DNA from: Bugula neritina
Taxonomy: Eukaryota; Animalia; Bryozoa
Assembly (NCBI GenBank): GCA_964035545.1
Contig: OZ037770.1
Coordinates: 1,488,001 to 1,552,000 of the forward strand
DNA: 64,000 nt
Direction: 5' to 3'
Made by a program: the position numbers and the translations under genes. Under the pieces are notes generated by a model. That model was given only the letters and a program-made list of their open reading frames with translations. It was not told the DNA's origin and made no database searches. Shown one piece after another: positions 2,421 to 44,862 of the stretch (position 1 is the stretch's first letter; each line of letters opens with the position of its first letter).

Positions 2421-2519
2421 GAAATATTAAGTGTGGAAACAATGTAATTTAGTTCTTGCTATGATGAAAATTTAAAGAATATTATATTATAAAAGCTAGA
2501 TATAGATTTCTATAAAATG

Positions 2520-5031: not shown

Positions 5032-5064
5032 AGCATTACATAATTATGTAGAAAGAATAATGAT

Positions 5065-9047: not shown

Positions 9048-9049
9048 AG

Positions 9050-14660: not shown

Positions 14661-15545
14661 TTGGATCATTGTAAGTATTTCTGTTGTTGTACTGATTGAT
14701 GAATATTTTTTAGTTTGCATGGATATTTGCAACGATCAAGATGTCATTTGAACCTGGACTGGAATAAAGATGGAAAATCGAGAAGCTAGCTACAATTATT
14801 CTGTAGAAAAAAACTTGGTAAGCAAAAATAAGCTGCAGCATTAAGCAGTTAGCAATATGACGATGAACTTTGCTTGATTTTGATTGACCTTAAAATATCT
14901 GGTCACCTTTCACCAACGTGGCGGGTGACCTTAAAATGTCTGTTGCACGTAAAATATATTTTGTGACAGTCAAAAGTATGCTGATCTTTTTCGTATTTCA
15001 GTGCATCGGTGTCTTAGCTTAAGAGCTGAACCCAACAATTATGATCTAAAGCTGTTTTTTACTAGAAAGTGATTTTACTGTCTTTCTGATTATTCTTGGT
15101 TTTTCAGCTTGATGAATTGAATAAATGGATTTGATTTCGGGTATTATGTAATGGATGAAAGAAATTTTTCTTAAATTTGTACTGAGCAATTTTTGCTATT
15201 GCTATGATGTTTAGTGATAAAATTGCACCCTTAATAACCCTGAAAACTTTCATTACTAGCATTTGTTTATGTTCATTTTTAGGAAATTAAAATGAAGACA
15301 CAACTCACCAATGCTATCTCACTGTGCCTGCATGCAGTTTATCTAAAAAGGTACTCCTATTAGCTGGCTCTTGCCCAATACCTGGTTGTCTCTGTAACTA
15401 TTTTTTGCTCGCAGATGAGTTTTTTGAACTTGACATTTTATTGATTTTGAAAGTTATAGTGAGCTTTGAACTTGCTAGCATCGTTTTTAAAGACTTGCTG
15501 CAGTTTTTATCAACATTTTTTCAGTCAATGGTGTTAGTTTGGAAG

Positions 15546-15848
15546 CTCTCTCACTCCTCTCTCTGTCTCTTTCTCCCACACCTTCCACTCAACCTCTCTC
15601 TCTTTCTCCCCCTCTCTCCCACCCTCCCTTTCTCCCACCCTCCCTCTCTCCCACCCTCTGTCTCTCCCACCTTCTCTCTCTCCCACTCTCCGTCTCTCCC
15701 ACCTTCTCTCTCTCCTAACCTTTCTCTCTTCCCTTTTCCACTATCTCTCTGACTCTCTCCCTTTCTCTCTTCTACCCCATCTCTCTTCCATCCTCTCTCT
15801 TAACGTTTCTCTCCCACCCCTCCCCTCTCCCACTCTCTTTCTCTCTCT
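15546..15848 (+). repeat. CT-rich polypyrimidine tract (mirror GA-rich tract 51196-51498)
   Basis: ~300 bp of almost pure C/T; produces the LPLSP pseudo-ORF. Confidence 0.95.
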
Positions 15849-17474: not shown

Positions 17475-20048
17475 CACAGTTGGTTTAAGGTCATGCTTTT
17501 CATTTTCTGGCTCTTTGCCAGGTGCTTTATGTTCTATATGAACAATGTTCCACTGATAGCTCGAACAGGTTGAATGTCACAGGAACAAAAAAAATATAAA
17601 AAGATAAAGAAACTTATGTTCTCCAATATACTTTTTTATTTTTTTCAAAAGCCAATTCATGTTTAAGTTATAGCTTGTTGAAAAACATAGTCCCCCTTCC
17701 ACATTCTTTTCAATTTATACGCTCCTGACTTGTTATTGTGTCTCAATATGCCTTGTATTTGAGTGCTTGTTAGTCTCGCTTCACTAACTTTGCCTATACT
17801 TCACAAGTGCCAGTGCTGCTGGCTCAAAAGCTAAATGTTATAAACTGTCAGCTAAAACCCAATCTTGTATTCCTAGGTTGGTTGGCCTAAATAAAACAAT
17901 AGTCAAATCATGATTTCATGTTTTAAAAATTTACTCTATTCTAACCTGCTGCCTAGCTAGTTCTATTTTTGATGTATAATTACAAAATTTGTGATACATT
18001 TTTTTGGCAACCATGTAATTTATAAAATGCAGTAATGGTACTTATAATATTATATTATTATCATTATAATATATTATATAGTATTATGTGTGTTTTTATT
18101 ATCCTGCATAATATCTAATTTATTATTGTTGTTGTGCAAACAAGTGCAATTAACCTAGTTTTCAAAATGTACCTCTAAATTATCAGAATATCAGTTTAGA
18201 TATTTTCATGCTTTGTAAGGTAAACCTAAAAAAAGAGGCTGTATTCTCAAAGTAAAGGGTGTTGAACTATGAACTATATTAGATTAGCCACTCTGCTACC
18301 AAGTGCATCAGTATAATATTATATAAATAGCTCTGATGCTTTGTCTCCGGTGGCTGGCTGCGATATGATAACTTGGCCAACTTCCAAGAGTTTAAAATTG
18401 GCGCAATTATTCAAGAGGTTACATACTGCACAAAGCTAGCAGTGATAGTAACCTTGCTATTGGCAGTACTTATTACAACTGCCAGCATATAAGCTGCATT
18501 GTAGAATGCCGTTGGGGCAGGCTAGTAAAACCAAATTCTGCTCTCTAATATACCTTAGACAAAATGCAGCAACATAATTTTTAGTTTCAAATTACATTTG
18601 CCACCCTTACATGAGCTGTGGGCTTCATAAAGATTCATATGATTAGAGATTTATGCTATAGGCCCTATCTGTGCTAGTGTATGATGAAAATAACACACCA
18701 TTGTCAAAGTTAACTTCAAGTATGTTGTTTTCCAGAAACTCAGTAATGTCCATTTATCTCTCGCATACAAATACTTATGTAATACCATACAGTTTAAGTT
18801 TTATTTTAGAGCACATCTGCAAACTCTACAATAAGAGCTTGCTTTACCAGTCTATTTCAGACCTGTTTTTGTAGCTAGTAATACGCAAGCTACTTATTTT
18901 TAAACTTTTGGGTTATTTGTTCAAAACCATTAGCTTTGCTCGTAACCCGAGACTATTGCAACAGTTGACTGCTATCAACATGAATTGACAGCCTAATAAT
19001 TATAACCCTTTTGCGCGCGAAATATTCATGTAATGATAGTTACTCATATAGTGCGCGTCTTATTAACGATGACTGCGTGGTCTAGAGGTTAGAGGCGTCA
19101 GCGAGGAGTTAGTTGGTTATGGTTCAACCCTGTTTTGTCGCAATTTTTTTTGTCAACTTATGCAAATCCTACGCATGTATAATAAATATGGCTATAATTG
19201 TAAAGTTTTTTTTAACTTTTGTTAAACAGTAAGACAACATACATGCATAATAATTAGATCTGAACACTGGACTAAACCTTAAATTGATCTTATAGAATAC
19301 AATGTACTTAAAATAATCATATGTGAATTAGAGAAACTGAAAGTACACCTGCTGCTCTATAGACAGACCTTTACTGACAAGACTGCAAAGTGAAGTGATT
19401 TAGCTGAAATTAACTCTGCCAAACAAACAAAGAATTATGTTGTGCTGAGGCATTTTCAATATATTATTGTAACATAGTGAGATGATTCAGCTAAGTGCTA
19501 ATGTAAAACAGGGAACATTATATTGGCAGAAATCCAATAGACTGCCAATTTGTGCGAGAGGGTACTATATGTTATTGTGATAGCGCAGAGCGGCAAACGT
19601 ACTAGGAATGTTATAATTAGTCACAGGAGCGTAGCTAGAACCACCATATGAAGAATTTAGAAAATTGCAGTGAAACTTGCAAAATGGTGTATGTTTTTAC
19701 CAAATTGTGAAGAGCATAAACAGAATTTCAAAAAACAAAGAAAGTATATTAGAGAAAACATATCAAGGGATGTCAAGTTTAACTTTTATACTTTATAAAA
19801 TGAATCCCCTGTGCTACAGCAGTGGAACATGGAGGGTGTAAAATTTTACTTATTATGCAACAACTTTCTCAAAAAAATTTTTATTGAAAAATTAAAAAAG
19901 TATATGAAAGAGGAATGCAAGAGCTATCTTTTCATGTAAAATTTGTTAATGTGAGACAAAAACTGTTCGAGCTATCCCCTGGAAACCGTTTATATATAAC
20001 ATAAAGCAGTGCCTGAATCTGGAAAGTAATGACCTTAAACCAACTGTG
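17475..20048 (+). mobile_element. 2574-bp non-autonomous CACAG-terminal element, EnSpm/CMC-like, 2-bp TSD (CA)
   Basis: Perfect 20-bp TIR CACAGTTGGTTTAAGGTCAT; flanks gacCA|...|CAgtgg; arm B empty site (~49570, reverse strand) reads gacCAgcgg. Confidence 0.88.
19004..19563 (+). mobile_element. Old nested piggyBac-like MITE containing a tRNA-like A/B-box segment
   Basis: Imperfect TIRs aacccttttgcgc / gtgcgagagggta; internal GTGGTCTAGAGG...GGTTCAACCC at 19077-19130; also present at ~46444-47011. Confidence 0.45.
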
Positions 20049-21825
20049 CAGTGGCTTGCAATGCAATTGGTGAAATTTCAGACCTAGATAAATTGAATTT
20101 CTTACTGAAAATCGTGAAGGTGTTAAAGTTTAAAGTGAAAGTTTAAAGGGTCATCTCTCTGCGAATTCTAATAGCATGGTGCCAATTAGACTTGAAAAAA
20201 TTTCAAGGCACTACAAAGCACTAAGCCCATTCTTACAAGTAGTTTCAAAGTGCACTGGAATTTCAGTTTACTTGTCATTGTATAGAATCCTGATCTACAC
20301 TATATAGCATTCACTATTGCCTGCTTCTTCTAAGCATCTATAATGTATTAACTACAGTTTGCTTTGAGAAGTGAATTTCTACTTGGTATTTTTTCCTTAT
20401 CATTCCGTTGTTTGCCAGTAGTCTTAATTTAATGGATTTTCCCTTTTCAAAAGTGGTTGTGACAATCAAAACACATCATGCAGCCTGCAACTACACAATC
20501 AGTCAGTAATTTCTTCCATTAAAGTAGCTCTTCTGGTTACTCTTGCTCACCTAAAAGCCTGAGCCTCATTCAAATTGCAATTTTTTAGAGTTGTTAGTTT
20601 TTCATGCAGTCTTTCATTTTTTTTTTGTTAGGCACAAAATTAGTATTCACTAGACCTAATCTTTCATCTGCATGTATGCCTATTGTTTGTTCATTAAAGA
20701 AAAACCTCTGCTGAGTATTGAACTAATAATGAAAATAAATTCCCTAAACTAAAAGTAGCAGTGTGATTTTGGTATTACAATTAGTTGTTAGCATAGAGTC
20801 AAGTTATTGACAGGAATTTTCAAATTGAAATGAATGAATTTCATTGTAAGTCAGCAAGATTTGGTCTAAGTAAACATAGCATTACATCGTGTTTTATTTA
20901 GCATTTGCAGAAGGCAACATATATTTTAAGGATTATTGTAAACTTAAATGTAATTTTAAGTACTTTCCATGTTTGTTATTGTAGATGGTCTTGTTCTTTG
21001 GGATGGATGTGACAACTCCTTGTGTCAAGCTTAACTGATTGACTACTGAATCCCAATCATATGTTTTGCCAAAAAATGTGAAAATGGAGTGCATGTCTAC
21101 TTTATTTGAGAAAATATTAAAAATACTTTTGAAACTTCTTCTAGCCAAACAATACAACAGTTTCATTTCATTAAAAAATATCATTTGCACAGAAATGTAT
21201 TATGTAATCAAACAATTTCTAGAAAAAAAGTGCTTTCCTCCAGTTTTGCTAATGAACTACATTTTTCATTATATGCTTGTCTATATAATTTTATTAATTG
21301 TTTTTTCTAGTGAGTCAATTAAAGTCAATTCAACCTAGAAAAGTCTGAATTTCAGACTTAATTTCAAGCTAGAATATTCACATTTTTAGGTCTGCGTTTG
21401 CAAAAATTGTTGTGTTACTTTACTTTTTATATTTTTTGAAATAAATATCTTTTTAGCTTGTGCCTATTCATGATTAGAATAGTATAATAATATTTAACTT
21501 TTCTTCAATTTCAATAGATGAAAATGTTGATCAGTTGGAGTATTCAGTTTAGCTGAATTTTACTTGCTTCTGCGAAAACAATCTTTTGGAGTTGTCTGCC
21601 CTCTCTTTAGGTAATTTTTTGACCTATGGTCAACGCAATAATTATAACTTTTTAAAGATGCTTGTGAACCTAACAATATAGCATAACTATCAAACCACAT
21701 TATTCAATATCTGCATAAAATTTAGCCGATAAGCTGCCACCCAATGAGCTTGAAAAGATATTAGAATTCTAGCTCAGTGCTGCCATCAATGTAGATATTT
21801 ATAATGATATAAAGCCAAAACTCAT

Positions 21826-21854
21826 TATTTATAATGATATAAAGCCAAAACTCA
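21826..21854 (+). repeat. Second unit of a 30-bp tandem duplication (atttataatgatataaagccaaaactca), present in both arms
   Basis: Repeated from ~21797; mirrored at ~47767-47824. Confidence 0.8.
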
Positions 21855-24800
21855 ATATTGCATGAAATTATCTAACCATTCCTGACAAAGACTCGAGATA
21901 ATAACTCCAAAGTTGGTCAGTTGAAACCACAGCAATAATACTTTAATCCTTATAATTGTCAGGTTTAATTTTATACCAAGCCCCAATAAGTATATATCAC
22001 TATGACAACACAGCCTAAGCACCTCCAATGCAAGAAATTTAGTATTGTGGTGCTGCAAATCCTCCAGTTACAAATGAGTAGAGCTTTCATGATTATTGGT
22101 CTACCATAATGTTTATTTAGTTTTAAGGACTAGCATAAATGCTATTATATGTGGGAGGTATTTGAAAAGCTTCCAACTCCATCTTCAACTACGGGCTATT
22201 ATAATTATGCCGATAAACGAGATACTACACTCAGACTGCCCTGTTATAGTACTATGATTGGCTACTGCAAAATTTTTGCCGATAGACAACATTTAATTAT
22301 GATGTAATGTATCTCGTATTGGTACATAAGTGTTATGTCTGAGGACGAGATACTGTGAAATTATGCCCTGCATTTGAGAACAAGTTTTTGTACACATATA
22401 CTGCTAATTTCCTTTACTGCTTACACCAATTTATAATGTTGATAGCTTACTACATGTTGTGCACTTTCAGTCTACTAGCTCAGTAAGAGCTTCACTACAG
22501 TTTCAAGCTAATTCCAGCAGTAGACATCAGAATAGCTATATAGGCCTAGCTTGTTTGTATTGAATATGTGACTTCTAATCTAATTAAATTATAACTAAAG
22601 GAGTGGAGTATAGTTGTGGTATTATGAAGGGGGTGTTCAAATTTTTATCAATCATCTTCTTTTAAAAACAAAATAGTAAAATAAATAAATAGCTGTTTTT
22701 TTTCAAGTAAATCATCATTTATAAAACAATAATTTATATTTTGTATAATAATGATTAAAGCAAATGATATCATAATGCTTTCAAAAAAGCACGTAGAACG
22801 TTTATAATTCACATCCACCCCCACCCGGAAAAACCTACCCTAGTCATGCCACAGCTGCAGTGCACTGTCCTCAAACAAACCGCTCTGTGTAATATCATAC
22901 GTAGTAGCTGCATCTTGCCGTATTGGAGATGTTACTAGTAAAAGCTATCTCGGTAAATAAAATATTCGATGTTAAAACGCAATCTGTGAAGTGAACTTGC
23001 CAACTGGCGGTGGGATTATCATTATAAAATTGAGTGAAAAACGTCTTTTACCTCTCAAACCTAGGATGAAAGAGTGTACTTTGATTAACTTAAAAAGTTT
23101 AACTTCAAGGGTAAGTGAGTACATACTGCTTCCTTCAGCAAATTCGCATATTTCATATTGCTTACAAGCAATAATATATTTAATTTTATAGTATTTGTAT
23201 AGTTGTACTATTAGTATTACGGTAGGCCTATACTGCATGCGTATTACTATTACTATTACTATTACTATTACTATATTATTATTATTATTATTTGTATTGC
23301 ACAGTATCACTGAACTTCAAAATTGAGTTTTATATTCATAAAATGTATAGTAATATAGTCATTCATTAATGGTAGAACTATTACAAAGACTGTAAAACTA
23401 GATCTAAATTGTTCGTTCATTTCATCATTATGTAATTAACTTTAAGAAAAATTGCCAAATTTATTATTGACTATTATTTTTTTCTTCAATATTTAAAGTT
23501 CTGTAGTTGAGTAGGCACATAGAAAATATAATATTGCACTGAGGAGCTTTTGTTTAGTAATTCTAATTGTACTACTACTTGCATACCAAACTACATTTAC
23601 TGTGAGTGACCAACTTGAAATACATTATAAGCATATGTTTCAAAAAAATTGTAGTGGTCATGGCAATCATATCTACTGAGAAATTATTTGAAAAATACAA
23701 TTTCAAGGGAGCATTCAACATATTAATTGTAATTATGAGCTGTGTCTTTTATAAAGTTACCAGCAGGCAGCTTTGATCTGATTACAGTATAGGTAGATTT
23801 TACAGAATATAGACTACTATAATAGTACCTGTACTAGCTGTGGTGTATGAACATGTTAAATCAAATTTCAAATGTTGAAAATTACTTTTGAATGTATTGA
23901 GAAATCTGCTATTGTATTTTTAGATGATGCCCCAAAACAAGTGGCTTATACTAGAGGATTAAGTTTTGCCAATGAAATGCTATAGTATGTGTAATCAGGA
24001 CATCTTTTCAATGTCAGCTGCAGCTCTTAGGATTTTTTGATCTTCTACTCTTGCAAGACGATATCTTTTTATGTTTAAAAAGCATAATACTCTACAATTG
24101 ACACCTATATATCAAGACTCTACCTGCAAGAATAGGACTTCTATCCACGAATATAAAAACTAAAATTATTAATAGTTGACAGGACTAATTACCCTAGCAA
24201 TGTGCCTTTTAGTTAGGCTTTTGCAGCTTGAATTTTTATAGATTCTGCTTTTTTACAAAGTCAGTTTGACATTTAATATCGTAATGTTTGCTAAAGAAAA
24301 GTAATTAGGGAACTAACCTATTATTTCCCCCAAGTTTGTAATATATTTATAGGATGTATTGCTATAAAAAGGCCTGACTTATTTCTTCACAATAGTACAC
24401 ACCTGTTACACCTTCTGCATGTTCACATTATTCATTGAACTTGCTACTTCTATGCCTGATCATACGTGTATATATATTATATTATGTTTGAAAATCCAAA
24501 CTGATTTTTGTTGTGATCTTTAGCAATGGCTATCTGGTATTTACTTGAATAAAACTGAAAGATTTGTTGCATATGCCTAAATTCTCAAGTCAATTCTTGT
24601 TATGGAATATTATAACTGCAGCATCAAAATAATAGATAATGCATTGCTAGTTATATCTGAGCTGATTAACTGACACCTATCAGTCTGGAAACAAAACTGA
24701 ATTCACTGAACATCTGTTTTTATCTTAAGGAGGTTTTCTTTTCAAATTCTCAATACTTGTCTAGCTAAGATTAAAACTTTTCATCGTGGATGTTTCACTC

Positions 24801-25899
24801 GGGCAAGCATGCATAGTGTCGGTCAGTCAGTCTAACTAGACACAGCTTTTTCTATTAGATGCTAAATTTAGAAACATAAAATAGTTGATAATCTTGGCTC
24901 TGAGTTGGTATACAAACCGATGATATGCTTGAGTGAACACTGCGCAGCTATGATAACCAACTATTGATAGTAGCTGCCAGGAGTATAAAAGGAGCCCAGT
25001 TGTTTGCTGGCCTCAAATTTATTTCTCAGTGCAAGGCAACAAGATACAGCTCATAGCCAATTTTTGGACATTTAGATAGAAGCCATTTAGGCTTGATTGG
25101 ATCTTTAAAAGTTTAGACTGTATACAGCAGAGAGCAAATAGAATATACTTAAAGCACAGGCTCATGGTCTAACCTTTTATATAGTTCCAAGTTCCAACTC
25201 ACTTCAATAAGTGTTGATTATTGCTTATATACTAATGTACAATGGGACCACAAAAGTACCTACTAGCTTTATTAGACATTTTCAGCAATCAAATCCTTTA
25301 CCCAAACCATCTAAACTCAAAGTGGCCACACAAGATTCTGCATATCTGCCCTTCACAGCTACCAACAAAATCTCGCACATGACTATCTGACCTATATACA
25401 AGTCTCTTTACTATTCTAATCTATTGTGCAGAGTCTGTAACTGATTGTAATAGTTTAGCAGTGAGAAGTGTTTTTACAACTAGAAGAGGATTTTAATGAT
25501 GAAGGTAATTTTGGTTTTAAGTTAGTCAATGGTAGTGAACAGATAGATTAATAGTCTAGCCTAAAAACATTATGCTTTGAGAAAAGAGCATCTCTAAATT
25601 ATTTGTTATGACTGCCTTTTACAGTATTTAAATAATAACTGCATTAAAATTTCAAAGGTTGTAGTCAAGCCTGTAATTATTAACAACTTTATTAGGCTAG
25701 CCAAATGGAAGAACATTGAGTTAGCATTAGCATTTAGCTTGCTTCCAGAATCTGAAATAGTTTTACATTGTTTGTTGAAAAAGCAGTTATGAAAATTATC
25801 TTCCTTTGTACATCAAGTACATTGCACATGAAACGAACCACTGGTGTCTTGTAGTAATAATAATGCTTAGCCTTGCCATGACCACATACTTGCTCAATA

Positions 25900-26091
25900 G
25901 ATTGTTGCGATAGTTGTAATATGAACAGGTGCAGCCCTAGCTAATTTGATGGTCTGTTGGCAATTGTTCAAACTCATGCTAAAATATGACAAGTAGGCAA
26001 TACGCATGCCGCCCACAGAGCAATAGCAACTAGGAACTGAGCCTAGATTATAAGATGATATTTTGCTGGGAATGACCTTAACTATGCTGTG
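25900..26091 (-). mobile_element. One end of a CACAG-family MITE abutting the tandem array
   Basis: Minus strand begins CACAGCATAGTTAAGGTCAT and contains tgtgggcggcatgcgtattgcctacttg, matching the 39161 element; other end not found. Confidence 0.65.
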
Positions 26092-26093
26092 TA

Positions 26094-29000
26094 TCATAGG
26101 TGCAATTACATGGACAGCACTCTAAAACACTCAGCACAGCAGATAAAGAGTTTTCTTATAGATTGACAAAAGGGGAGTGATGTACACTATAAGTATTAAG
26201 TAAAGGTAAATATAGATTATACTACTTTCAACTTATAGGATTTCTTCACATCCTATTGAAAACATATAGAGAAGTAGTGCTCTCACCTGGCTGATATCCG
26301 GACTTTTTTCAGTCCTGGTAGTGTCTCCCCAACTAGGTTCAAATACCTAAAGGAATCTTTAAAATTATTAAATGAGCAAAAGTTTTTTTGTGATGAGCTA
26401 GCAAAATATGTAGGTTATCCTTAGCGTTGTCCACTATATATAAGTTAAAATTATTATGTAAACTTAGATAAAGATTATGCCAAAACTTTTGACCAGTAAT
26501 TTTATAACATCTTGAAAATTTATAGACATGATGCTCCCACCTTGCTCTTGTGACTCTCTGACATTCTAGAATTTGATAGGTCGCTTTTTATTGAAGCAAA
26601 AACAGTTTCCTAAAAGTAAATTTAATAATCTCAGAATTCTGCGGATAGTGCTTTTCACAATTTGCAGAAACGATGTATTTTGAAAGTCTGTTAAAGTGAT
26701 TTTTGTCAATATTTTTGGCATCTTTTCAGTTGATTTACAAATTTTATGAACAATATTTTAAATCCGACAGAAGGAATCTCACAATTGCATAAAATGTCGA
26801 AAGACAAAGTAAGTCACGTTCTCAAATTATGGAGTTTTTTATTTTTCTTGCAATCCAATTTCTAATTAATTAACAGCATGTTGAAACATCGAGCTCTATT
26901 GACATTTTCATCCACACGTGATTGCCCCCGTCTCAAAATTCTCTGGCAATCTTATGCTATGGAAATTTAAAGCTCCATCAAACTATATCATAGGTGCAAT
27001 TACATGGACAGCACTCTAAAACACTCAGCACAGCAGATAAAGAGTTTTCTTATCGATTGACAAAAGGGGAGTGATGTACACTATAAGTATTAAGTAAAGG
27101 TAAATATAGATTATACTACTTTCAACTTATAGGACTTCTTCACATCCTATTGAAAACATATAGAGAAGTAGTGCTCTCACCTTCCTGATATCCGGAATTT
27201 TTTCAGTTCTGCTAGTGTCTACCCAACTAGGTTCAGATACCTAAAAGAATCTTTAAAATTATTAAATGAGCAGAAATTTTTTGTGATGAGCTAGCAAAAT
27301 ATGTAGGTTATCCTTAGCGTTGTCCACTATATATAAGTTATAATTATTATGTAAACTTAGATAAAGATTATGCTAAAACTTTTGACCAGTAATTTTATAA
27401 CATCTTGAAAATTTATAGACATGATGCTCCCACCTTGCTCTTGTGACTCTCTGACATTCTAGAATTTGATAGGTCGCTTTTTATTGAAGCAAAAACAGTT
27501 TCCTAAAAGTAAATTTAATAATCTCAGAATTCTGCCGATAGTGCTTTTCACAATTTGCAGAAACGATGTATTTTGAAAGTCTGTTAAAGTGATTTTTGTC
27601 AATATTTTTGGCATCTTTTCAGTTGATTTACAAATTTTATGAACAATATTTTAAATCCGACAGAAGGAATCTCACAATTGCATAAAATGTCGAAAGACAA
27701 AGTAAGTCACGTTCTCAAATTATGAAGTTTTTTAATTTTCTTGCAATCCAATTTCTTATTAATTAACAGCATGTTGAAACATCGAGCTCCATTGACATTT
27801 TTATCCACACGTGATTGCCCCCGTCTCAAAATTCACTGGCAATCTTATGCTATGGAAATTTAAAGCTCCATCAAACTATATCATAGGTGCAATTACATGG
27901 ACAGCACTCTAAAACACTCAGCACAGCAGATAATGAGTTTTCTTATCGATTGACAAAAGGGGAGTGATGTACACTATAAGTATTAAGTAAAGGTAAATAT
28001 AGATTATACTACTTTCAACTTATAGGATTTCTTCACATCCTATTGAAAACATATAGAGAAGTAGTGCTCTCACCTTCCTGATATCCGGAATTTTTTCAGT
28101 TCTGCTAGTGTCTCCCCGACTAGGTTCAGATACCTAAAAGAATCTTTAAAATTATTAAATAAGCAGAAATTTTTTGTGATGAGCTAGCAAAATATGTAGG
28201 TTATCCTTAGCGTTGTCCACTATATATAAGTTATAATTATTATGTAAACTTAGATAAAGATTATGCTAAAACTTTTGACCAGTAATTTTATAACATCTTG
28301 AAAATTTATAGACATGATGCTCCCACCTTGCTCTTGTGACTCTCTGACATTCTAGAATTTGATAGGTCGCTTTTTATTGAAGCAAAAACAGTTTCCTAAA
28401 AGTAAATTTAATAATCTCAGAATTCTGCCGATAGTGCTTTTCACAATTTGCAGAAACGATGTATTTTGAAAGTCTGTTAAAGTGATTTTTGTCAATATTT
28501 TTGGCATCTTTTCAGTTGATTTACAAATTTTATGAACAATATTTTAAATCCGACAGAAGGAATCTCACAATTGCATAAAATGTCGAAAGACAAAGTAAGT
28601 CACGTTCTCAAATTATGAAGTTATTTAATTTTTTTGCAATCCAATTTCTTATTAATTAACAGCATGTTGAAACATCGAGCTCCATTGACATTTTTATCCA
28701 CACGTGATTGCCCCCGTCTCAAAATTCACTGGCAATCTTATGCTATGGAAATTTAAAGCTCCATCAAACTATATCATAGGTGCAATTACATGGACAGCAC
28801 TCTAAAACACTCAGCACAGCAGATAAAGAGTTTTCTTATAGATTGACAAAAGGGGAGTGATGTACACTATAAGTATTAAGTAAAGGTAAATATAGATTAT
28901 ACTACTTTCAACTTATAGGATTTCTTCACATCCTATTGAAAACATATAGAGAAGTAGTGCTCTCACCTTCCTGATATCCGGAATTTTTTCAGTTCTGGTA

Positions 29001-32000
29001 GTGTCTCCCCAACTAGGTTCAAATACCTAAAGGAATCTTTAAAATTATTAAATGAGCAAAAGTTTTTTTGTGATGAGCTAGCAAAATATGTAGGTTATCC
29101 TTAGCGTTGTCCACTATATATAAGTTATAATTATTATGTAAACTTAGATAAAGATTATGCCAAAACTTTTGACCAGTAATTTTATAACATCTTGAAAATT
29201 TATAGACATGATGCTCCCACCTTGCTCTTGTGACTCTCTGACATTCTAGAATTTGATAGGTCGCTTTTTATTGAAGCAAAAACAGTTTCCTAAAAGTAAA
29301 TTTAATAATCTCAGAATTCTGCGGATAGTGCTTTTCACAATTTGCAGAAACGATGTATTTTGAAAGTCTGTTAAAGTGATTTTTGTCAATATTTTTGGCA
29401 TCTTTTCAGTTGATTTACAAATTTTATGAACAATATTTTAAATCCGACAGAAGGAATCTCACAATTGCATAAAATGTCGAAAGACAAAGTAAGTCACGTT
29501 CTCAAATTATGGAGTTTTTTATTTTTCTTGCAATCCAATTTCTTATTAATTAACAGCATGTTGAAACATCGAGCTCTATTGACATTTTCATCCACACGTG
29601 ATTGCCCCCGTCTCAAAATTCTCTGGCAATCTTATGCTATGGAAATTTAAAGCTCCATCAAACTATATCATAGGTGCAATTACATGGACAGCACTCTAAA
29701 ACACTCAGCACAGCAGATAAAGAGTTTTCTTATCGATTGACAAAAGGGGAGTGATGTACACTATAAGTATTAAGTAAAGGTAAATATAGATTATACTACT
29801 TTCAACTTATAGGATTTCTTCACATCCTATTGAAAACATATAGAGAAGTAGTGCTCTCACCTTCCTGATATCCGGAATTTTTTCAGTTCTGCTAGTGTCT
29901 ACCCAACTAGGTTCAGATACCTAAAAGAATCTTTAAAATTATTAAATGAGCAGAAATTTTTTGTGATGAGCTAGCAAAATATGTAAGTTATCCTTAGCGT
30001 TGTCCACTATATATAAGTTATAATTATTATGTAAACTTAGATAAAGATTATGCTAAAACTTTTGACCAGTAATTTTATAACATCTTGAAAATTTATAGAC
30101 ATGATGCTCCCACCTTGCTCTTGTGACTCTCTGACATTCTAGAATTTGATAGGTCGCTTTTTATTGAAGCAAAAACAGTTTCCTAAAAGTAAATTTAATA
30201 ATCTCAGAATTCTGCCAATAGTGCTTTTCACAATTTGCAGAAACGATGTATTTTGAAAGTCTGTTAAAGTGATTTTTGTCAATATTTTTGGCATCTTTTC
30301 AGTTGATTTACAAATTTTATGAACAATATTTTAAATCCGACAGAAGGAATCTCACAATTGCATAAAATGTCGAAAGACAAAGTAAGTCACGTTCTCAAAT
30401 TATGAAGTTTTTTAATTTTCTTGCAATCCAATTTCTTATTAATTAACAGCATGTTGAAACATCGAGCTCCATTGACATTTTTATCCACACGTGATTGCCC
30501 CCGTCTCAAAATTCACTGGCAATCTTATGCTATGGAAATTTAAAGCTTCATCAAACTATATCATAGGTGCAATTACATGGACAGCACTCTAAAACACTCA
30601 GCACAGCAGATAAAGAGTTTTCTTATCGATTGACAAAAGGGGAGTGATGTACACTATAAGTATTAAGTAAAGGTAAATATAGATTATACTACTTTCAACT
30701 TATAGGATTTCTTCACATCCTATTGAAAACATATAGAGAAGTAGTGCTCTCACCTGGCTGATATCCGGACTTTTTTCAGTTCTGCTAGTGTCTCCCCAAC
30801 TAGGTTCAGATACCTAAAGGAATCTTTAAAATTATTAAATGAGCAAAAATTTTTTGTGATGAGCTAGCAAAATATGTAGGTTATCCTTAGCGTTGTCCAC
30901 TATATATAAGTTATAATTATTATGTAAACTTAGATAAAGATTATGCCAAAACTTTTGACCAGTAATTTTATAACATCTTGAAAATTTATAGACATGATGC
31001 TCCCACCTTGCTCTTGTGACTCTCTGACATTCTCGAATTTGATAGGTCGCTTTTTATTGAAGCAAAAACAGTTTCCTAAAAGTAAATTTAATAATCTCAG
31101 AATTCTGCGCATAGTGCTTTTCACAATTTGCAGAAACGATGTATTTTGAAAGTCTGTTAAAGTGATTTTTGTCAATATTTTTGGCATCTTTTCAGTTGAT
31201 TTACAAATTTTATGAACAATATTTTAAATCCGACAGAAGGAATCTCACAATTGCATAAAATGTCGAAAGACAAAGTAAGTCACGTTCTCAAATTATGAAG
31301 TTTTTTAATTTTCTTGCAATCCAATTTCTTATTAATTAACAGCATGTTGAAACATCGAGCTCCATTGACATTTTTATCCACACGTGATTGCCCCCGTCTC
31401 AAAATTCTCTGGCAATCTTATGCTATGGAAATTTAAAGCTCCATCAAACTATATCATAGGTGCAATTACATGGACAGCACTCTAAAACACTCAGCACAGC
31501 AGATAATGAGTTTTCTTATCGATTGACAAAAGGGGAGTGATGTACACTATAAGTATTAAGTAAAGGTAAATATAGATTATACTACTTTCAACTTATAGGA
31601 TTTCTTCACATCCTATTGAAAACATATAGAGGAGTAGTGCTCTCACCTGGCTGATATCCGGACTTTTTTCAGTTCTGCTAGTGTCTCCCCAACTAGGTTC
31701 AGATACCTAAAAGAATCTTTAAAATTATTAAATGAGCAGAAATTTTTTGTGATGAGCTAGCAAAATATGTAGGTTATCCTTAGCGTTGTCCACTATATAT
31801 AAGTTATAATTATTATGTAAACTTAGATAAAGACTATGCTATAACTTTTGACCAGTAATTTTATAACATCTTGAAAATTTATAGACATGATGCTCCCACC
31901 TTGCTCTTGTGACTCTCTGACATTCTAGAATTTGATAGGTCGCTTTTTATTGAAGCAAAAACAGTTTCCTAAAAGTAAATTTAATAATCTCAGAATTCTG

Positions 32001-35000
32001 CCAATAGTGCTTTTCACAATTTGCAGAAACGATGTATTTTGAAAGTCTGTTAAAGTGATTTTTGTCAATATTTTTGGCATCTTTTCAGTTGATTTACAAA
32101 TTTTATGAACAATATTTTAAATCCGACAGAAGGAATCTCACAATTGCATAAAATGTCGAAAGACAAAGTAAGTCACGTTCTCAAATTATGAAGTTTTTTA
32201 ATTTTCTTGCAATCCAATTTCTTATTAATTAACAGCATGTTGAAACATCGAGCTCCATTGACATTTTTATCCACACGTGATTGCCCCCGTCTCAAAATTC
32301 ACTGGCAATCTTATGCTATGGAAATTTAAAGCTCCATCAAACTATATCATAGGTGCAATTACATGGACAGCACTCTAAAACACTCAGCACAGCAGATAAA
32401 GAGTTTTCTTATCGATTGACAAAAGGGGAGTGATGTACACTATAAGTATTAAGTAAAGGTAAATATAGATTATACTACTTTCAACTTATAGGATTTCTTC
32501 ACATCCTATTGAAAACATATAGAGAAGTAGTGCTCTCACCTGGCTGATATCCGGACTTTTTTCAGTTCTGCTAGTGTCTCCCCAACTAGGTTCAGATACC
32601 TAAAGGAATCTTTAAAATTATTAAATGAGCAAAAATTTTTTGTGATGAGCTAGCAAAATATGTAGGTTATCCTTAGCGTTGTCCACTATATATAAGTTAT
32701 AATTATTATGTAAACTTAGATAAAGATTATGCCAAAACTTTTGACCAGTAATTTTATAACATCTTGAAAATTTATAGACATGATGCTCCCACCTTGCTCT
32801 TGTGACTCTCTGACATTCTCGAATTTGATAGGTCGCTTTTTATTGAAGCAAAAACAGTTTCCTAAAAGTAAATTTAATAATCTCAGAATTCTGCGCATAG
32901 TGCTTTTCACAATTTGCAGAAACGATGTATTTTGAAAGTCTGTTAAAGTGATTTTTGTCAATATTTTTGGCATCTTTTCAGTTGAATTACAAATTTTATG
33001 AACAATATTTTAAATCCGACAGAAGGAATCTCACAATTGCATAAAATGTCGAAAGACAAAGTAAGTCACGTTCTCAAATTATGAAGTTTTTTAATTTTCT
33101 TGCAATCCAATTTCTTATTAATTAACAGCATGTTGAAACATCGAGCTCCATTGACATTTTTATCCACACGTGATTGCCCCCGTCTCAAAATTCTCTGGCA
33201 ATCTTATGCTATGGAAATTTAAAGCTCCATCAAACTATATCATAGGTGCAATTACATGGACAGCACTCTAAAACACTCAGCACAGCAGATAATGAGTTTT
33301 CTTATCGATTGACAAAAGGGGAGTGATGTACACTATAAGTATTAAGTAAAGGTAAATATAGATTATACTACTTTCAACTTATAGGATTTCTTCACATCCT
33401 ATTGAAAACATATAGAGGAGTAGTGCTCTCACCTGGCTGATATCCGGACTTTTTTCAGTTCTGCTAGTGTCTCCCCAACTAGGTTCAGATACCTAAAAGA
33501 ATCTTTAAAATTATTAAATGAGCAGAAATTTTTTGTGATGAGCTAGCAAAATATGTAGGTTATCCTTAGCGTTGTCCACTATATATAAGTTATAATTATT
33601 ATGTAAACTTAGATAAAGATTATGCTAAAACTTTTGACCAGTAATTTTATAACATCTTGAAAATTTATAGACATGATGCTCCCACCTTGCTCTTGTGACT
33701 CTCTGACATTCTAGAATTTGATAGGTCGCTTTTTATTGAAGCAAAAACAGTTTCCTAAAAGTAAATTTAATAATCTCAGAATTCTGCGCATAGTGCTTTT
33801 CACAATTTGCAGAAACGATGTATTTTGAAAGTCTGTTAAAGTGATTTTTGTCAATATTTTTGGCATCTTTTCAGTTGAATTACAAATTTTATGAACAATA
33901 TTTTAAATCCGACAGAAGGAATCTCACAATTGCATAAAATGTCGAAAGACAAAGTAAGTCACGTTCTCAAATTATGAAGTTTTTTAATTTTCTTGCAATC
34001 CAATTTCTTATTAATTAACAGCATGTTGAAACATCGAGCTCCATTGACATTTTTATCCACACGTGATTGCCCCCGTCTCAAAATTCTCTGGCAATCTTAT
34101 GCTATGGAAATTTAAAGCTCCATCAAACTATATCATAGGTGCAATTACATGGACAGCACTCTAAAACACTCAGCACAGCAGATAATGAGTTTTCTTATCG
34201 ATTGACAAAAGGGGAGTGATGTACACTATAAGTATTAAGTAAAGGTAAATATAGATTATACTACTTTCAACTTATAGGATTTCTTCACATCCTATTGAAA
34301 ACATATAGAGAAGTAGTGCTCTCACCTTCCTGATATCCGGAATTTTTTCAGTCCTGGTAGTGTCTCCCCGACTAGGTTCAGATACCTAAAAGAATCTTTA
34401 AAATTATTAAATGAGCAGAAATTTTTTGTGATGAGCTAGCAAAATATGTAGGTTATCCTTAGCGTTGTCCACTATATATAAGTTATAATTATTATGTAAA
34501 CTTAGATAAAGATTATGCTAAAACTTTTGACCAGTAATTTTATAACATCTTGAAAATTTATAGACATGATGCTCCCACCTTGCTCTTGTGACTCTCTGAC
34601 ATTCTAGAATTTGATAGGTCGCTTTTTATTGAAGCAAAAACAGTTTCCTAAAAGTAAATTTAATAATCTCAGAATTCTGCCGATAGTGCTTTTCACAATT
34701 TGCAGAAACGACGTATTTTGAAAGTCTGTTAAAGTGATTTTTGTCAATATTTTTGGCATCTTTTCAGTTTATTTACAAATTTTATGAACAATATTTTAAA
34801 TCAGACAGAAAGAATCTCACAAATGCATAAAATGTCGAAAGACAAAGTAAGTCACGTTCTCAAATTATGGAGTTTTTTAATTTTCTTGCAAACCAATTTC
34901 TTATTAATTTACAGCATGTTGAAACATCGAGCCCCATTAACATTTTTATCCACACGTGATTGCTCCTGTCTCAAAATTCACTGGCAATCTTATGCTATGG

Positions 35001-35025
35001 AAATTTAAAGCTCCATCAAACTATA
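26094..35025. repeat. Tandem array of ten 893/894-bp units, followed by diverged partial units to ~36010
   Basis: tcataggtgcaatt recurs at 26094, 26988, 27881, 28774, 29668, 30561, 31454, 32347, 33240, 34133 and ~35025. Confidence 0.99.
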
Positions 35026-38000
35026 TAGGTGCAATTACATGGACAGCACTCTAAAACACTCAGCACAGCAGATAAAGAGTTTTCTTATAGATTGACAAAA
35101 GGGGAGTGATGTACACTACAAGTATTAGGTAAAGGTAAATATAGATTATACTACTTTCAACTTATAGGATTTCTATATATCATATTGAAAACATATTTAT
35201 TTAGAAGTACTCACCATCCCGATCTCCTTACACGTTTCAATTTTGTGAGTGTTTCCCAAAATAGGTTTGGACACCTAAAAAAAATTCTTTGAAATTATTG
35301 AATGAGTAGAAATGTTTTGTGATGAGTTAGCAAAATATGTAGATTATTTTTAGAGTTGTCCACTATATATAAGTTATATATATTATGTAAGCTCCGATAA
35401 AGATCATGATATAAATTTTGACCATGCAGTATTTTTATATCATCATGAAAATTTATTGAATTGATGCTCCTACCTCGCTCTTGTGAAATGATGAAATTCC
35501 ACTGAAACTCATTGAACCAATGTCAGGTACCTAAAATAGACTTTTCTTATAGATTGACAAAAGGGGAGTGATGTACATTATAAGTATATTAGGTAAAAAG
35601 ATAAATATAGACTATACTACTTTCAACATATATGATTTCTTTATATCATATTGAAAATATATAGAGGAGTAGTGCTCTCACATTTTTGATCTCTGGACAG
35701 GTTGCAATCCCGCTAGTGTCTCCCAAAATAGATTTAGATGCCTAAAAAAAATTCTTCAAAATTACCTAATGAGTAGAAATTTATTTGTGATGAGCTAGCA
35801 AAATATGTAGATTATCCTTAGCGTTGTCCACTATATATAAGTTATAATTATTATGTAAACTTAGATAAAGACTATGCTATAACTTTTGACCAGTATTTTT
35901 ATAACATCTTGAAAATTTATAGACATGATGCTCTCACCTTGCTCTCGTGACTCTCTGACATTCTAGAAGATGATTGGCAGTGTTCCATTGGATTAAAGCT
36001 AGCTCCCTACAATAATTTTTTGTACTAAATTTGTAATAATATCATAAATAATATCATACCTAAATCAGCGGATATTTAAAAGTTGAAAAAGTTGTATTCA
36101 TAAGTCTTCAAAAGTTGTCTTTTTCTGTTTTTGGCATTTTTTTAACTGATTTGCATATTCTCTGGACAACACTCTAGTAATGCATGTGAGAAATGCAGAG
36201 ATAGAATTGAAATATAAATTAGGTCATGTCTTCCAGTGAAATTCAAATTTTCTCGAAAACTCGTTGTTTTTTCAGTTTGCAGCATGTTGAAAAATATAAG
36301 CCCTTATTGAAATTTCTGCACACACGCATACAAGCGCTTGACCCAGCTTTGGATGGCTACATTATTATACTGTTTTTGAGTGTTTGGGAGTCAAGCTTCT
36401 CTTGGTTACATTACATTATGTACATTGCAAGCACAACTGCTAGAAACATGTAATATCTGAGGTTTGGGAAAATTGATTGTATTAACAGCTATAGATCTTA
36501 CTATACCCAAGCTACTAATAGTTCTATAATATTTGATATAATTGCTAATCTTGTCTGCCAATTCTCCTATTTACAGCATTTAATCTTGTATTAAAGAATT
36601 ATAAGATTAATTTATCAGCAAATTTTTTTTATACCAGTTTAATGCTATTCAATAAAAAAACATCACGTATTAAAATCATATTTGATTTTCGGTATTCGTA
36701 GTACGATTAAGTCTACAATTTTCAAAGTGTATATATACTGATTACGGCTCTTAACTCCCTATCATTACATGTACTGCATAATATTTGCTTGCAAACAATT
36801 AACCATTTATGTCAGACTATATACATGCGTTCATCAAAAATCTTGGTTTACTATCTGCTTTCTTATGCATAATATATAGTAGTATAAATGTTTTGTCATG
36901 CCTTTTTATGTCACACTTTGAAAATTTTTATGCAATGTTGTAGCTGCATCAGAACATACAACTGAAACAAGTTTTACCAATAATACCAGCTTTTGAAGAA
37001 TCTCCATATTATTGTTGGTAAACTTGATTGATTTTCTGGCAACTGCCTATCTGGTTTTTTCATAAAATAATTATTGTAGTACTAAATAAAAAGTATGTCT
37101 ATCATCCTATACTATTATTTTAGAGGTATAGAGAACTTTAGGGCAATCAGTAGTAATATATAGTCATCGTATTGAATAATCGCATGCAACCACAGATATG
37201 TTAAATTTGTACTCTTTGGAATATTGGTTAAATTTATTTTCTACTGAAAAACCATTTCCAGCAAATGACTAAAACAATTACTGCTAGCAAAAAATAAATT
37301 TTAGTTTAGAAAGCATATATATATTATCTTAGCAAATAAATTATATCACATCTACAAAATATTGTTATTACTGGAATTTATATATATAATTGTCTTTTCT
37401 ATAATTATACAATTTATTGATGGAATATTGCACTTTCGTTGTTCTCTTCAAACAGTTGCTTTTCAAAAATGTACCCTTTACGATCGAAGAAACTATAAGT
37501 GCATATGCAACTGAAAAAAACTTTCACATTTTCAACCCGGCAGAAATTATGTTTGATTGAAATTGTTGTACAGTATCACTACTATGTAAGATTGAATAAG
37601 TATTTTACTACTTTCAACTTATAATATTAAAACATATAGAAATAATTTTTTCACTTTGCTTCGTTGATATTTTTGTATTCTAAAAAACTTCTTCAAACCT
37701 AGTGCAGGTATCTCCAAAATTGAAATTAATAATGAAATTTAAAACTATCGAATTAGCAGAAACTACTTTCGAGAAGTTGACAACAAAGTGCAAGTTCTAC
37801 CTATTATTGTACATTATAAGTATTATGCATAGTTATTGGTGAAGGGCATGCTACTTTACATTAGTATTTCATTTTATTATATTGAAAGTGGTTAGACATA
37901 GTGATCCGGCACATCATGACATGCTTGCATTTATTGAATTGATCTCTCATCTCCAGTCAAAATAGATTTATGTGCCTAAAGTAACCTTTAACTTGTTGCA

Positions 38001-40999
38001 ATAGAGCAGTATGCAGTGCCTACTCGAACAGTTTAAGCTCTTGTTTCTCATTCCATGGAATAAATTATAAATAGCATTCTATTGAAATCTCAGTTATCGG
38101 ATGGGCAGCTAGCATATATACAAGCCAACTGGTTAACAAACACTGAGCAAAATTTTATTTTTGTTTCAAATTAAAGTTGAGAGAGGTGCATGAATATAAA
38201 AATAGGAAAATGTTTGGGTTCTAGCTTAAAAATTAGCATAGAAAATTATTTTCATGTAAGAGCTGGTATATATAAGCAAATTCAAACTAAATTTTAATAC
38301 GAAAATTAAAGAACTTGGCCTATTGAAACGTCTCCATGACTGCTAGCAGCTGTTTCCTTATTGTGAAAACCCTGAGGAAAATAATGGCAATTAAAAAAAA
38401 AAATTGCAGTATATTATGCAGCTTTGAGGGTGATCATTTTAGAGTTTAATTATAAATGTACTTGGCGAAAAAAAAAGAATCAATGAATTTGCAAAAAATA
38501 ATATTTTCTATTTCTATACGGACTTTTTCAGGTACTTTTGCTCCATGAGCCTCTTTTTATTTTGTTGATTTTAAGGAGATGATGTAGTACTGCTGTACTT
38601 GACAAAAGTTTACTAAAAAGAGTGCAGAAAATGAGATAGGAGATTAGGGTCACAGTATCTCGACCGAATAGCCCAATGTTCACCCAAGCTAAACCTTGTT
38701 CAATAGAGATTATGGCAATGAAGGGTGCTTTTCAATACTTAAGTAAGGTACTAATGTGGTGGTTTGTGACGTCACCCGTATAATATAAAAGGGAAAGTGT
38801 TGTTCCCCCTTTCTAAAGAATACTGTAATCATCATGCACATGGAGGTGACATGATCATGATGAACTAGCCAATAGGAACAGTTTGGGGTCATGTGAACAA
38901 TTAGTAAGAGTTCCCGCGTAGAGTGTTGTGGTGAGTGAGGACTCAAGTTGTAAACACGTATTGTGAATGTGTACTATTGTGGATTGACAATGTTTTTCTC
39001 ATGTACTTCATTTTATAAATATAGTGTTCTATTATCCGGCTACTTATACCTTGTTAAATTGATTAGATTGGAGCAAATGTACTAATTGATTATACACACT
39101 GATAACCCCCATAAGTGAAAATCAACAACAGTATAATAGGGAATATATATGAAGAATTACCACAGGATAGTTAAGGACATCCTCACTAAGAATATCATAA
39201 ATAATTTCTCTCAAAATGTAGTTTAGGTTTTTGAATAATATGGCTTTGTGGGTGGCATGCGTGTTGCCTACTTGCAATTGTTTAGCCTAAGATCAAACTA
39301 CAACCAATAAGCAGCAACCTTTATTAGGGCTGCGTAATCTATCAACATTCCATTATGGGTGCTACATAAACAAAGTACAAAGCAAGCTATTCATTATAGC
39401 CTGCCAGCTAGTAAGCCTGTAATTATTATGTACGCGCCAATATCTTCTCATCTCTACGTGCTCATTGAAGCGTAAAGTGCTGCGCGCTGCTAATTTTCTA
39501 TGAAAAAATATAGTATATTCAGTGTATAAATCACCAATTTATGGGCAATCTAGAAGAGTTATTGGAAAAAAAAAAGATTTGCACTGGAGAAATATCTCAG
39601 GATTCCAGCAGTGCAATTTTTATTCAGATATCATGTTTTCCTGCTGAGTTATTTTACTGGCACTGAAAAGTCAGCTTTTCAGGCAAAATTGGCCAAAATT
39701 GGGCAGTTTTCTGTCTATAACTTTGCAAAAAAAATGAAAATTGAAATTTCCAAAAAACTTACACTGGAGAAAAAGAAGATCTACAACATAGTTTTTAAGT
39801 TTTGACTCTAGCACAATTAGGTGAGATTTTATTTTACTGGCAGTGAATTCTTGTATGATTAAAATGCAAACCTCAGCAAGGCAGTTGCAGGTAAAATGTT
39901 GCCCTTAACTATCCTGTGAGAGTCAATGCTTTTGTAATGTTGGTCGTAACTACAGCCCATTTGACTAAATATAATGTTCATTTTGCTTACTTTACCTTCC
40001 TTTCATATTTGAGTCCATAATTAGTTGAATTATGAGAAGCCTATATAGGGAGGTCTACGAATGACTATAAATGAAAGAACAATCTCGTGTTATTTTAGCA
40101 CGAACTTCAATATAAAGAAAACATTGAAAACACAAATCTTTAAAGCTGAATAATATTTAAATACATTTAACAAAATGACTTACTAATATTTTATGGACCT
40201 GTTTGCTAAAGACTCATAAGCGTCCTACGTTGCTTAATTTTAAAGTCGTTTGTTTCAGGCTAAGACACTATATTATATAAGCAAATCAATAGGTTTAAAA
40301 AAATGCTAAAAAGTTAGTTATTTTAACTGGTTAGCTGTTATCCAATGTGAAGAGTATAGGAATATTTCACTAAGTGCTTAGAATAAATCAAGAAAAAAAT
40401 ATTTTTTTATTAGAAAGCTACACAGTCAGAGATATTATTTTTGTGATGAAATTATCTTTGTTCAAATTGTTGTACTCGCTGTGCATTCACTTTCAATAAT
40501 GTTTTCAACATGTAAAGATTTACTTATCTCACCTTGCTCTGTGAATCACGTGCGCTATTCATCTAAAATAAATTAAAAACAAATGCAACTCAAACGATGT
40601 TTACAAGTTGACGAAGTAGTATACTATACACAAACAGTTTAAGGGCATGTTTCTTAGGTCTTGGCATCTTTCTAGCTATGTATGACATCAAAAACATTCC
40701 ACAGAATATGCTAGATGAAAAAAAATTATATAGTATTTTTTTGAGCAAACATGAAAGATTTGCGAAACATTTTATAATAATATAGTTATAGTTATGCAAA
40801 TGAGAATTATATTGTAAAAAATATATTGCAGATAATATTGTTCTCACAAGAGCAGTTCTTTACTTTTAATAAGTGTTTACACTGAAATTTGACAAACCTC
40901 AAGTATTTTATGTCAAAATCAGAAAAAAATAACATATTCTATTTGAACTAATTTCCTGCGATTACAAACCAATCTAGAAAAGAAATCCTTGCCGTCCAT
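26287..40999 (-). CDS. Predicted micro-exon gene encoding an unknown Ser/Lys-rich repetitive protein; 3' end unresolved
   Basis: Candidate exons: 40999-40970 MDGKDFFSRL; 40881-40848; 40675-40632; 40562-40533 MNSARDSQSK; 40267-40229; 40040-39996 ASHNSTNYGLKYERK; 37711-37655 (weak acceptor); 36006-35938; 35741-35682; 35530-35474; 35274-35215; then 10 x (69 nt ETVFASIKSDLSNSRMSESHKSK + 60 nt VSEPSWGDTSRTEKSPDISQ variants), last pair 26609-26541 and 26346-26287. All AG/GT bounded and jointly in frame. The 5' exons are less certain than the array exons. Confidence 0.65.
38591..39130 (+). mobile_element. Possible solo LTR
   Basis: TGCTGT...ACAACA ends, flanks gtac/gtat (1 mismatch), internal TGACGTCA and TATAAAAGGG, higher GC than surroundings. 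Confidence 0.4.
39161..39918 (+). mobile_element. 758-bp CACAG-terminal MITE (EnSpm/CMC-like)
   Basis: 16-bp perfect TIR CACAGGATAGTTAAGG; TSD not intact (ac/ag). Confidence 0.75.
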
Positions 41000-41060: not shown

Positions 41061-41385
<325 letters not shown>

Positions 41386-41388
41386 ACA

Positions 41389-43510
<2,122 letters not shown>

Positions 43511-43555
43511 GTTCATATATAATATATAATATCTAATATATATATAATATATATA

Positions 43556-43646
<91 letters not shown>

Positions 43647-43675
43647 AATATATCTTTACGAGCTAGTAATTTGAT

Positions 43676-43871
43676 TATAAATAGGTATACGAGAAACATT
43701 GTTATTTATTACGTTATTAGGTAAAGTAATTACACTGATATTTCGGGTACCACTTTACCCATCTTCAGAGTAGCATTCATTGCTACTCTGAAGATGGGTA
43801 CAGCGGTACCCGAAATATCAGTGTAATTACTTTACCTAATAAAGTAATAAATAACAATGTTTCTCGTATAC

Positions 43872-43880
<9 letters not shown>
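43676..43880. mobile_element. ~205-bp fold-back element, Penelope-like terminal repeats in inverted arrangement
   Basis: Two ~100-bp inverted arms around a ttcat loop (43776-43780), three mismatches seen; AATAAA in each arm; (TA)n on both sides. Confidence 0.8.
43779..43827 (+). ncRNA. Minimal type I hammerhead ribozyme motif (mirror copy on minus strand 43729-43777)
   Basis: attgctact-CTGAAGA-T-GGGTAC(agcg)GTACCC-GAAA-TA-TC|agtgtaat: core boxes, 6-bp stem II, bulged stem I, palindromic ATAT in place of stem III. Confidence 0.65.
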
Positions 43881-44081: not shown

Positions 44082-44862
44082 ATGCTGTGTGCATGTGCTT
44101 GTGCGAGTAATTACTATTGAAGTAGCATTCAATATCTCTCATATTAAATCTCAATTCACCTTACTCGCCATTGATGATGTCATAGAAAGCAGATAAAGTT
44201 CACATACAATTATTACCAGACACACAAAAAATACTAAACATAATGCCTCTCCGACCTAAAACTGTTATTTAATAAATAATTTGTCACAGTGATAGGAGTA
44301 TTTAACGTAGACATGAGCTATATAGTCAAGGAAATCTTCAGAGAAAGATACAGCTCTACAAGTCAATGATTGGAGGGATGCACTTTCGATTAATAGTACT
44401 GAACACTTACCTATTAGCCAAACACAACTTTTTGATGCAGCTTGTTTCTAGTATAACTAGTATAAGTTCCAGATGTTCCACCTTGTTCAGCACTTCTTAT
44501 TTTGCACTCGTTTCCAGAAAAAAGTTTTACACACTGTTTTACTTTTTTTCTTGCCAAAGACTTTACAGAGAGTCAAACGAATGGCTGCCTCTAGGTAGGA
44601 TGCCCAACTAAGTCGAAGAACTCTTTTGAAGTGAGCCAATTCAAGGTTATAAAATTATGTGAAAATTCTTGTACAAGTTGCCTATTCTACTCTATTATTC
44701 AAACTCAATAATGCACATGATTTCTATATTTTGTTTTGTGGGCACAAAACACACTTGTTGTTTTAATGATTACTGGAAGTTTCCAAAACAATTGGCTTTA
44801 TTGCTGATATACTTGTTGTAATTTAAACAGGTATAAAAGCTAAATTATTGGAAACTTCCAAC

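Follow-up and report, generated by a model that had tools for sequence, protein, structure and literature searches.

Introduction

Several genes encode a protein repeat in tandem genomic units that include introns, an architecture already known from parasites, fungi, spiders and humans. In the polymorphic mucins of Schistosoma mansoni (SmPoMuc), genomic repeats of about 1 kb, each an exon plus an intron and up to 20 in number, encode the protein repeat (PMC2576457). Their introns are more than 93% identical while the exons differ, they undergo concerted evolution, and the number of repeats varies between individuals (PMC2576457). Here we describe a locus of the bryozoan Bugula neritina within a 64,000-nucleotide stretch of contig OZ037770.1 (assembly GCA_964035545.1, positions 1,488,001 to 1,552,000), referred to as the window, in whose coordinates all positions are given. 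An array of exon-intron units on the minus strand of the window likely represents the repeat-bearing part of a protein-coding B. neritina gene, single-copy and lineage-restricted, that grew by copying of an exon pair.

Among the described systems, SmPoMuc is the closest to this locus in its working, with exon-intron units of about 1 kb, homogenised introns and differing exons in both. However, a unit of SmPoMuc contains a single exon, of 27 bp, and the protein repeat measures 9 amino acids (aa); there are several SmPoMuc genes, with a signal peptide, demonstrated glycosylation and a C-terminal region that is conserved. The Bugula array has two exons per unit (69 and 60 nt) and a 43-aa repeat, at one locus of a free-living animal. 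Searches with single exons found no sequence relation to SmPoMuc, and the gene is not a member of that family.

Other genes share parts of this design. In the same paper, modular spider silk genes and the SOWgp gene of Coccidioides are also described as exon-plus-intron genomic repeats under concerted evolution, with silk introns more homogenised than silk exons (PMC2576457). The Bugula array resembles silk in that its exons are less homogenised than its introns, and SOWgp in its concerted exon-intron repeats. Silk exons are long and Gly/Ala-rich, whereas those of Bugula are short, charged and Ser-rich. The KIV-2 repeat of human LPA has two exons per unit. This 5.6 kb unit varies in copy number within one gene, with more than 40 size isoforms (PMC6314250), and is reported to show little sequence variation (PMC4378929). 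KIV-2 encodes a folded kringle, whereas the Bugula unit contains no known domain and has hypervariable exons. The gene for oyster sperm bindin, also present in single copy, owes its diversity to repeat number, recombination and positive selection (PMC5712786); it has F-lectin domain repeats and demonstrated alternative splicing, neither of which applies to the Bugula gene.

Schistosome micro-exon genes (MEGs) have mostly non-repetitive exons of at most 36 bp, all have signal peptides and generate diversity by exon skipping (PMC8293314). The initial annotation of the window likened the array to these genes. Although symmetric exons, fast evolution and transposon-rich surroundings are common to both (PMC8293314), the likeness fails on size, as 24 exons of the locus measure 57-69 nt and only one candidate exon (D, see below) measures 30 nt; in addition, skipping is not seen among the listed splice joints and no signal peptide is established.

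No bryozoan gene of this kind was found in the literature, which was covered incompletely, and the Bugula gene is apparently an undescribed instance of a known architecture, from a phylum whose genes have been little studied. What is new is that its exons outpace its introns in divergence and that the colony from which RNA was available carries a different exon repertoire. These two features make the gene a candidate for a locus of recognition or of host-microbe interaction; B. neritina belongs to a species complex in which cryptic species and the bryostatin symbiosis have been studied. It is also a case of a strongly spliced orphan gene concealed in sequence that repeat masking would discard.

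An array of paired phase-0 exons

The array consists of ten units in tandem, each 893 bp long apart from one of 894 bp, which extend from 26092 to about 35020, with weaker homology reaching 35977. The unit exceeds the reach of the tandem-repeat finder but is evident when the window is compared with itself. On the minus strand, each unit (26092..34647 in all) comprises exon A of 69 nt, an intron of 193 nt, exon B of 60 nt and an intron of 571 nt, which gives 43 codons per unit and 430 over the ten. The ten A exons (23 aa; 26541..34647) have their first bases at 34647, 33754, 32861, 31968, 31075, 30182, 29289, 28395, 27502 and 26609, and the ten B exons (20 aa, six different peptides; 26287..34385) at 34385, 33492, 32599, 31706, 30813, 29920, 29026, 28133, 27240 and 26346.

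The initial annotation had described the array as paired 69-nt and 60-nt phase-0 segments with splice sites, in which the alternative frames meet stops in some or most units, and both statements hold. The patterns ttttag/69 nt/gtggg and tttag/60 nt/gtgag are present on the minus strand in 10/10 units with phase 0 open throughout, and the splice sites of all 20 array exons are identical. By comparison, exon A has a stop in frame +1 in all ten copies and in frame +2 in eight, and exon B has one in frame +2 in all ten copies and in frame +1 in two. Dinucleotide shuffles of one unit never yielded two such exons (0/2000), and yielded one exon in 1.2% of cases. The sole variant of exon A (TCT/TCG, in the copies at 31075 and 32861) is synonymous, as had been noted.

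Four diverged exons precede the array in the direction of transcription, and the coordinates, lengths and peptides first assigned to them are all correct. In order, they are A0 (35938..36006, A-type, 69 nt), B-1 (35682..35741, B-type, 60 nt), C (35474..35530, A-type, 57 nt) and B0 (35215..35274, B-type, 60 nt), with first bases at 36006, 35741, 35530 and 35274. Shuffles of the 1-kb block that holds them gave more than one exon in 0/1000 cases. A0, C and A form one family and B-1, B0 and B the other, so that the whole block consists of twelve A/B pairs, and every exon is symmetric, with a length that is a multiple of 3 and phase 0. Further upstream, at 37523..38103 on the minus strand, lie decayed relics of B-type exon starts with their introns and no intact exon.

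The exons are spliced in RNA

Sequencing reads, in the form of assembled contigs rather than raw reads, were aligned to 34295-40290; such contigs lose rare variants, and their depth is a rough guide only. X1 and X2 are RNA-type runs of one sample, labelled symbiont metagenome RNA-Seq and dated 2016, and X3 is a DNA run identical to the reference in its unique parts. The RNA colony is about 6% diverged from the reference in introns and, judging by this divergence, comes from another population or a sibling species. At a guess, the sample may be the ovicell RNA of PMC5041132.

If the array belongs to a gene whose 43-aa repeat was expanded as exon-intron blocks, as initially proposed, spliced minus-strand RNA should be found at the locus, and it is. 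Two exact GT-AG joints remove the introns 35937-35742 and 35681-35531 in both X1 and X2, joining A0 to B-1 and B-1 to C, at a depth 16-28 times that of the intron contigs; neither joint is present in X3. Six further exon-exon loose ends in the RNA runs could be mapped back to the window: C is followed by B0 and B0 by A (both in X2), A by a B-type exon, B by C and a C-like exon by B, and A0 at 36006 is preceded by an unknown A-like exon, so that B-type exons are joined at both ends. The segments are therefore real exons, spliced in the order A-type to B-type to A-type. The relics at 37523-38103 are missing from the contigs of the RNA colony, as a 581-nt skip in X1 and X2.

Copy number and unit make-up

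The contig depth in X3 is 406 for the array and 49 for unique DNA, and the long intron of the array reaches 8.3 times the unique depth, where nine copies are assembled and expected. The DNA run supports about 8-9 copies, and because the depth of the long intron is near the assembled copy number, the array is not an assembly error. No second locus was found elsewhere in the genome, in keeping with a single-copy gene.

The array of the RNA colony is not that of the reference. Its intron-level joint between 35536 and 34655 delimits a unit of 882 bp in which C takes the place of A (C+B), in agreement with the spliced B-to-C loose end of the same colony. Back-splicing was considered as the cause of that loose end and rejected, as the intron-level joint gives the identical order. 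Two exons of the RNA colony have no close match in the reference; the one upstream of 36006 was not found within 324 kb around the locus, nor genome-wide at 3 mismatches. The make-up of the units thus differs between the two individuals. The RNA stems from this different array; the ten-unit allele would likely be transcribed through all of its units.

Exons diverge more than introns

The ten units have a mean divergence of 1.4% and differ at 33 sites. They are mosaics, since 35 of the 171 informative site pairs fail the four-gamete test. Such low divergence among mosaic units is as expected of unequal crossing-over and gene conversion, and homogenised, recombining units next to diverged copies at the 5' edge are the picture of concerted evolution.

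Against this background, exon B stands out. Within the array, 8/60 of its sites vary, compared with 25/765 in introns (P 0.0016), and seven of the eight changes are non-synonymous, mostly transversions. Identity among the older B-type paralogs is 67-70%, against 87-94% for the introns that flank them (Fisher P 1e-5, 2e-5 and 4e-4 in three mutually non-independent comparisons). In B-type ends, 10/11 of the differences that separate the RNA colony from the reference are non-synonymous; for B0 the two differ at 8/58 sites, compared with 6% in introns (P 0.03, on the assumption of orthology). The excess of exon changes is not of the CpG type.

The frame is constrained and the amino-acid sequence is not. 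About 58 substitutions among the older paralogs have produced no stop (P about 0.05); in the ten young units, the chance of no stop among 9 changes is 62%, so their open frames carry little information. Purifying selection, which the initial annotation implied, is not supported by exons that differ more than introns and by about equal proportions of non-synonymous (pN) and synonymous (pS) differences, and with 7/8 variable sites of exon B non-synonymous the array does not have the look of protein-level conservation. The excess over introns suggests diversifying selection, and on these sequence comparisons we lean towards selection as the force that would maintain the exon differences.

The predicted protein

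The 430-aa product of the ten units is 24% Ser, 10% Lys, 9% Glu, 8% Thr and 5% Pro, with a net charge of +2. Its composition indicates that it is probably a long, Ser-rich, charge-balanced, disordered repeat. Homology searches were made exon by exon, and with short queries of about 20 aa they are weak; the gene is accordingly an orphan in a provisional sense. Five single exons had no match in Pfam, and one exon searched in the ESM Atlas gave a best value of 0.75, which is uninformative. A profile search with B-type exons against 1.84 billion proteins returned three matches at E about 5e-4, which were rejected as unrelated 10-aa repeats aligned over 8-10 positions.

Candidate ends of the gene

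Two candidate exons lie upstream on the minus strand. Exon D (40533..40562, 30 nt, phase 0) starts with ATG, has the strongest upstream splice-site pair and a 3' end resembling A-type exons; it lies outside the stretch covered by the read alignment. The other (44160..44255, 96 nt) lies in unique DNA, is open in phase 0 with moderate splice scores, and has a hydrophobic stretch (19-aa hydropathy 2.99) followed by two Met codons; it may provide a signal or membrane anchor. No well-supported Met exon was found upstream of it, in a 5' region without RNA coverage.

At the other end, the intron that follows the last B exon is interrupted, at a TA, by a multi-copy transposon with a terminal inverted repeat (22371..26091; 49 genomic matches, 74-98%). 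A 20-kb element, present in six copies, in turn cuts this transposon at 22370. The remainder of the interrupted intron was not found elsewhere in the assembly, nor did the 324 kb examined yield a family member as 3' exon. Because the transposon cuts the last intron, the reference allele may be truncated; alternatively, it may end in an unrecognisable exon.

A high-copy miniature inverted-repeat transposable element (MITE) with the same kind of terminal repeat (39161..39918) lies in the upstream intron and is missing at this site in the RNA colony. In run X1 of that colony, the same family sits instead at a TA in a post-B intron, at window position 35119, so this MITE family has struck array introns twice, independently.

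Origin of the array and alternative explanations

How could such an array arise? An ancestral exon pair would have been duplicated to at least 12 pairs, the last ten units being of recent origin by unequal crossing-over and still mixed by gene conversion. As all exons are in phase 0, the gain, loss or swap of units would keep the frame. Variation would then arise mainly in the genome, where colonies differ in exon number and kind, and not through skipping. Introns that are homogenised while exon differences last would point to selection for a varied repeat, or at least none on its exact sequence.

Several observations weigh against a protein-coding gene shaped in this way. The RNA comes from one other colony, as contigs only, and its label as RNA is an automatic guess; among the joints listed, none connects B to A between two array units. 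Neither end of the gene is established, exon D and 44255-44160 being candidates, and the intron that follows B10 breaks off at a TA, where it meets the transposon's terminal repeat (26092). In the exons pN is about equal to pS, tests of non-synonymous versus synonymous change are not significant (P 0.16-0.5) and dN/dS above 1 is not shown; the three paralog comparisons are not independent, as stated above. Finally, 5% Pro is low for a mucin, and no signal peptide is shown.

With regard to function, the protein may tentatively be regarded, by analogy with SmPoMuc, as a polymorphic protein, secreted or on the surface, that serves in recognition or coating. More specifically, and this we consider improbable, it could be a self/non-self, gamete or symbiont recognition gene whose specificity would lie in a series of interchangeable phase-0 exon cassettes particular to each colony, which unequal crossing-over, and perhaps skipping as well, would reshuffle. 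An equally tentative alternative is that the array encodes a neutral spacer, the product being a disordered phosphoprotein inside the cell for which nothing but length, frame and approximate composition counts, with introns that look conserved only through conversion and splicing constraints. It is compatible with the structural part of our explanation and differs from it on function. The near equality of pN and pS fits such a spacer, as do the Ser/Lys/Glu-rich composition and the Met codons that the candidates at 44255 and 40562 carry in frame, after which there is no signal peptide. However, conversion that homogenises both flanks of a 60-nt exon should homogenise the exon too, unless selection preserves its differences, and the excess changes are not those of CpG mutation.

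It is less probable that the gene is real but its reference allele broken or partly used, the transposon and rearrangements having removed the 3' end and most units being skipped or untranslated, as a satellite grown from a gene. The lost remainder of the last intron, the cutting of the transposon at 22370 by a 20-kb element that occurs six times nearby, the decayed relics at 37523-38103 and the little informative frames of the young units would all be accommodated. In contrast, all 20 exons have kept identical splice sites, variation is concentrated in exon B, as would be unexpected for a non-coding satellite, splicing in the RNA colony continues past B-type exons to additional units, and the terminal exon could be diverged or transposon-derived.

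More doubtful still is a MEG-like array that yields many isoforms by combinatorial skipping within one individual. The initial annotation pointed out that phase 0 throughout lets skipping preserve the frame; the symmetry of the exons is confirmed, but no skipping joint occurs among the 15 of 26 supported joints listed, where all ends fit the exon order or a genomic unit swap. The low aligned depth of B0 in X1 could reflect skipping, but is also explained by the 14% divergence of B0 in the RNA colony, at the 85% alignment limit, and the exons exceed 36 nt. An assembly artefact, or splice-like motifs present by chance in a satellite that does not code for protein, is supported by nothing beyond the general difficulty of repeats and can hardly be credited given units that differ at 33 sites, DNA depth that fits the copy number, shuffles that never yield the pattern, and exact RNA joints, which refute it.

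Surrounding repeats and genes

The locus lies among many repeats. The 20-kb element occurs six times in both orientations around it, with copies about 98% identical, at 7795-22370, from 47251 to beyond 64000, and at four more places less than 130 kb away to the left or right. A CAG opens the element and a CTG closes it, which together with the 8-bp target duplication of one copy resembles a giant non-autonomous hAT element; the flanks of the other copies do not match, suggesting local rearrangement. A decayed non-LTR (long terminal repeat) retrotransposon lies inside it at 57100-60000.

Recent duplication has produced a cluster of RING/B-box/coiled-coil/NHL (TRIM-like) genes and gene fragments with 83-96% identity, which is interleaved with the 20-kb element and lies at window coordinates of about 71000-129000 (L005-L007, L030-L032), with fragments also left of the window. 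The array exons were considered as a tail of these genes, which was rejected since those genes have their own NHL-type exon.

A palindromic element between TA runs (43676-43880) would lie in an intron of the array gene, and a search of 22000-47500 against Rfam gave no match at gathering score, for this element or elsewhere. SmPoMuc genes carry an intronic hammerhead (PMC2576457); any likeness of the palindromic element to it is probably coincidence. Next to it, a 1.3-kb tandem duplication (91%; 41065-43653) has TA microsatellite borders and a GC-rich core and is otherwise unique in the genome. A 2.4-kb element is present in two copies (85%), at 17475-19808 and 44863-47246, the latter just upstream of the candidate first exons. 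Lastly, 1536-5032 holds an element whose inverted ends measure 886 bp (97%) and whose transposase-like open reading frames are broken.

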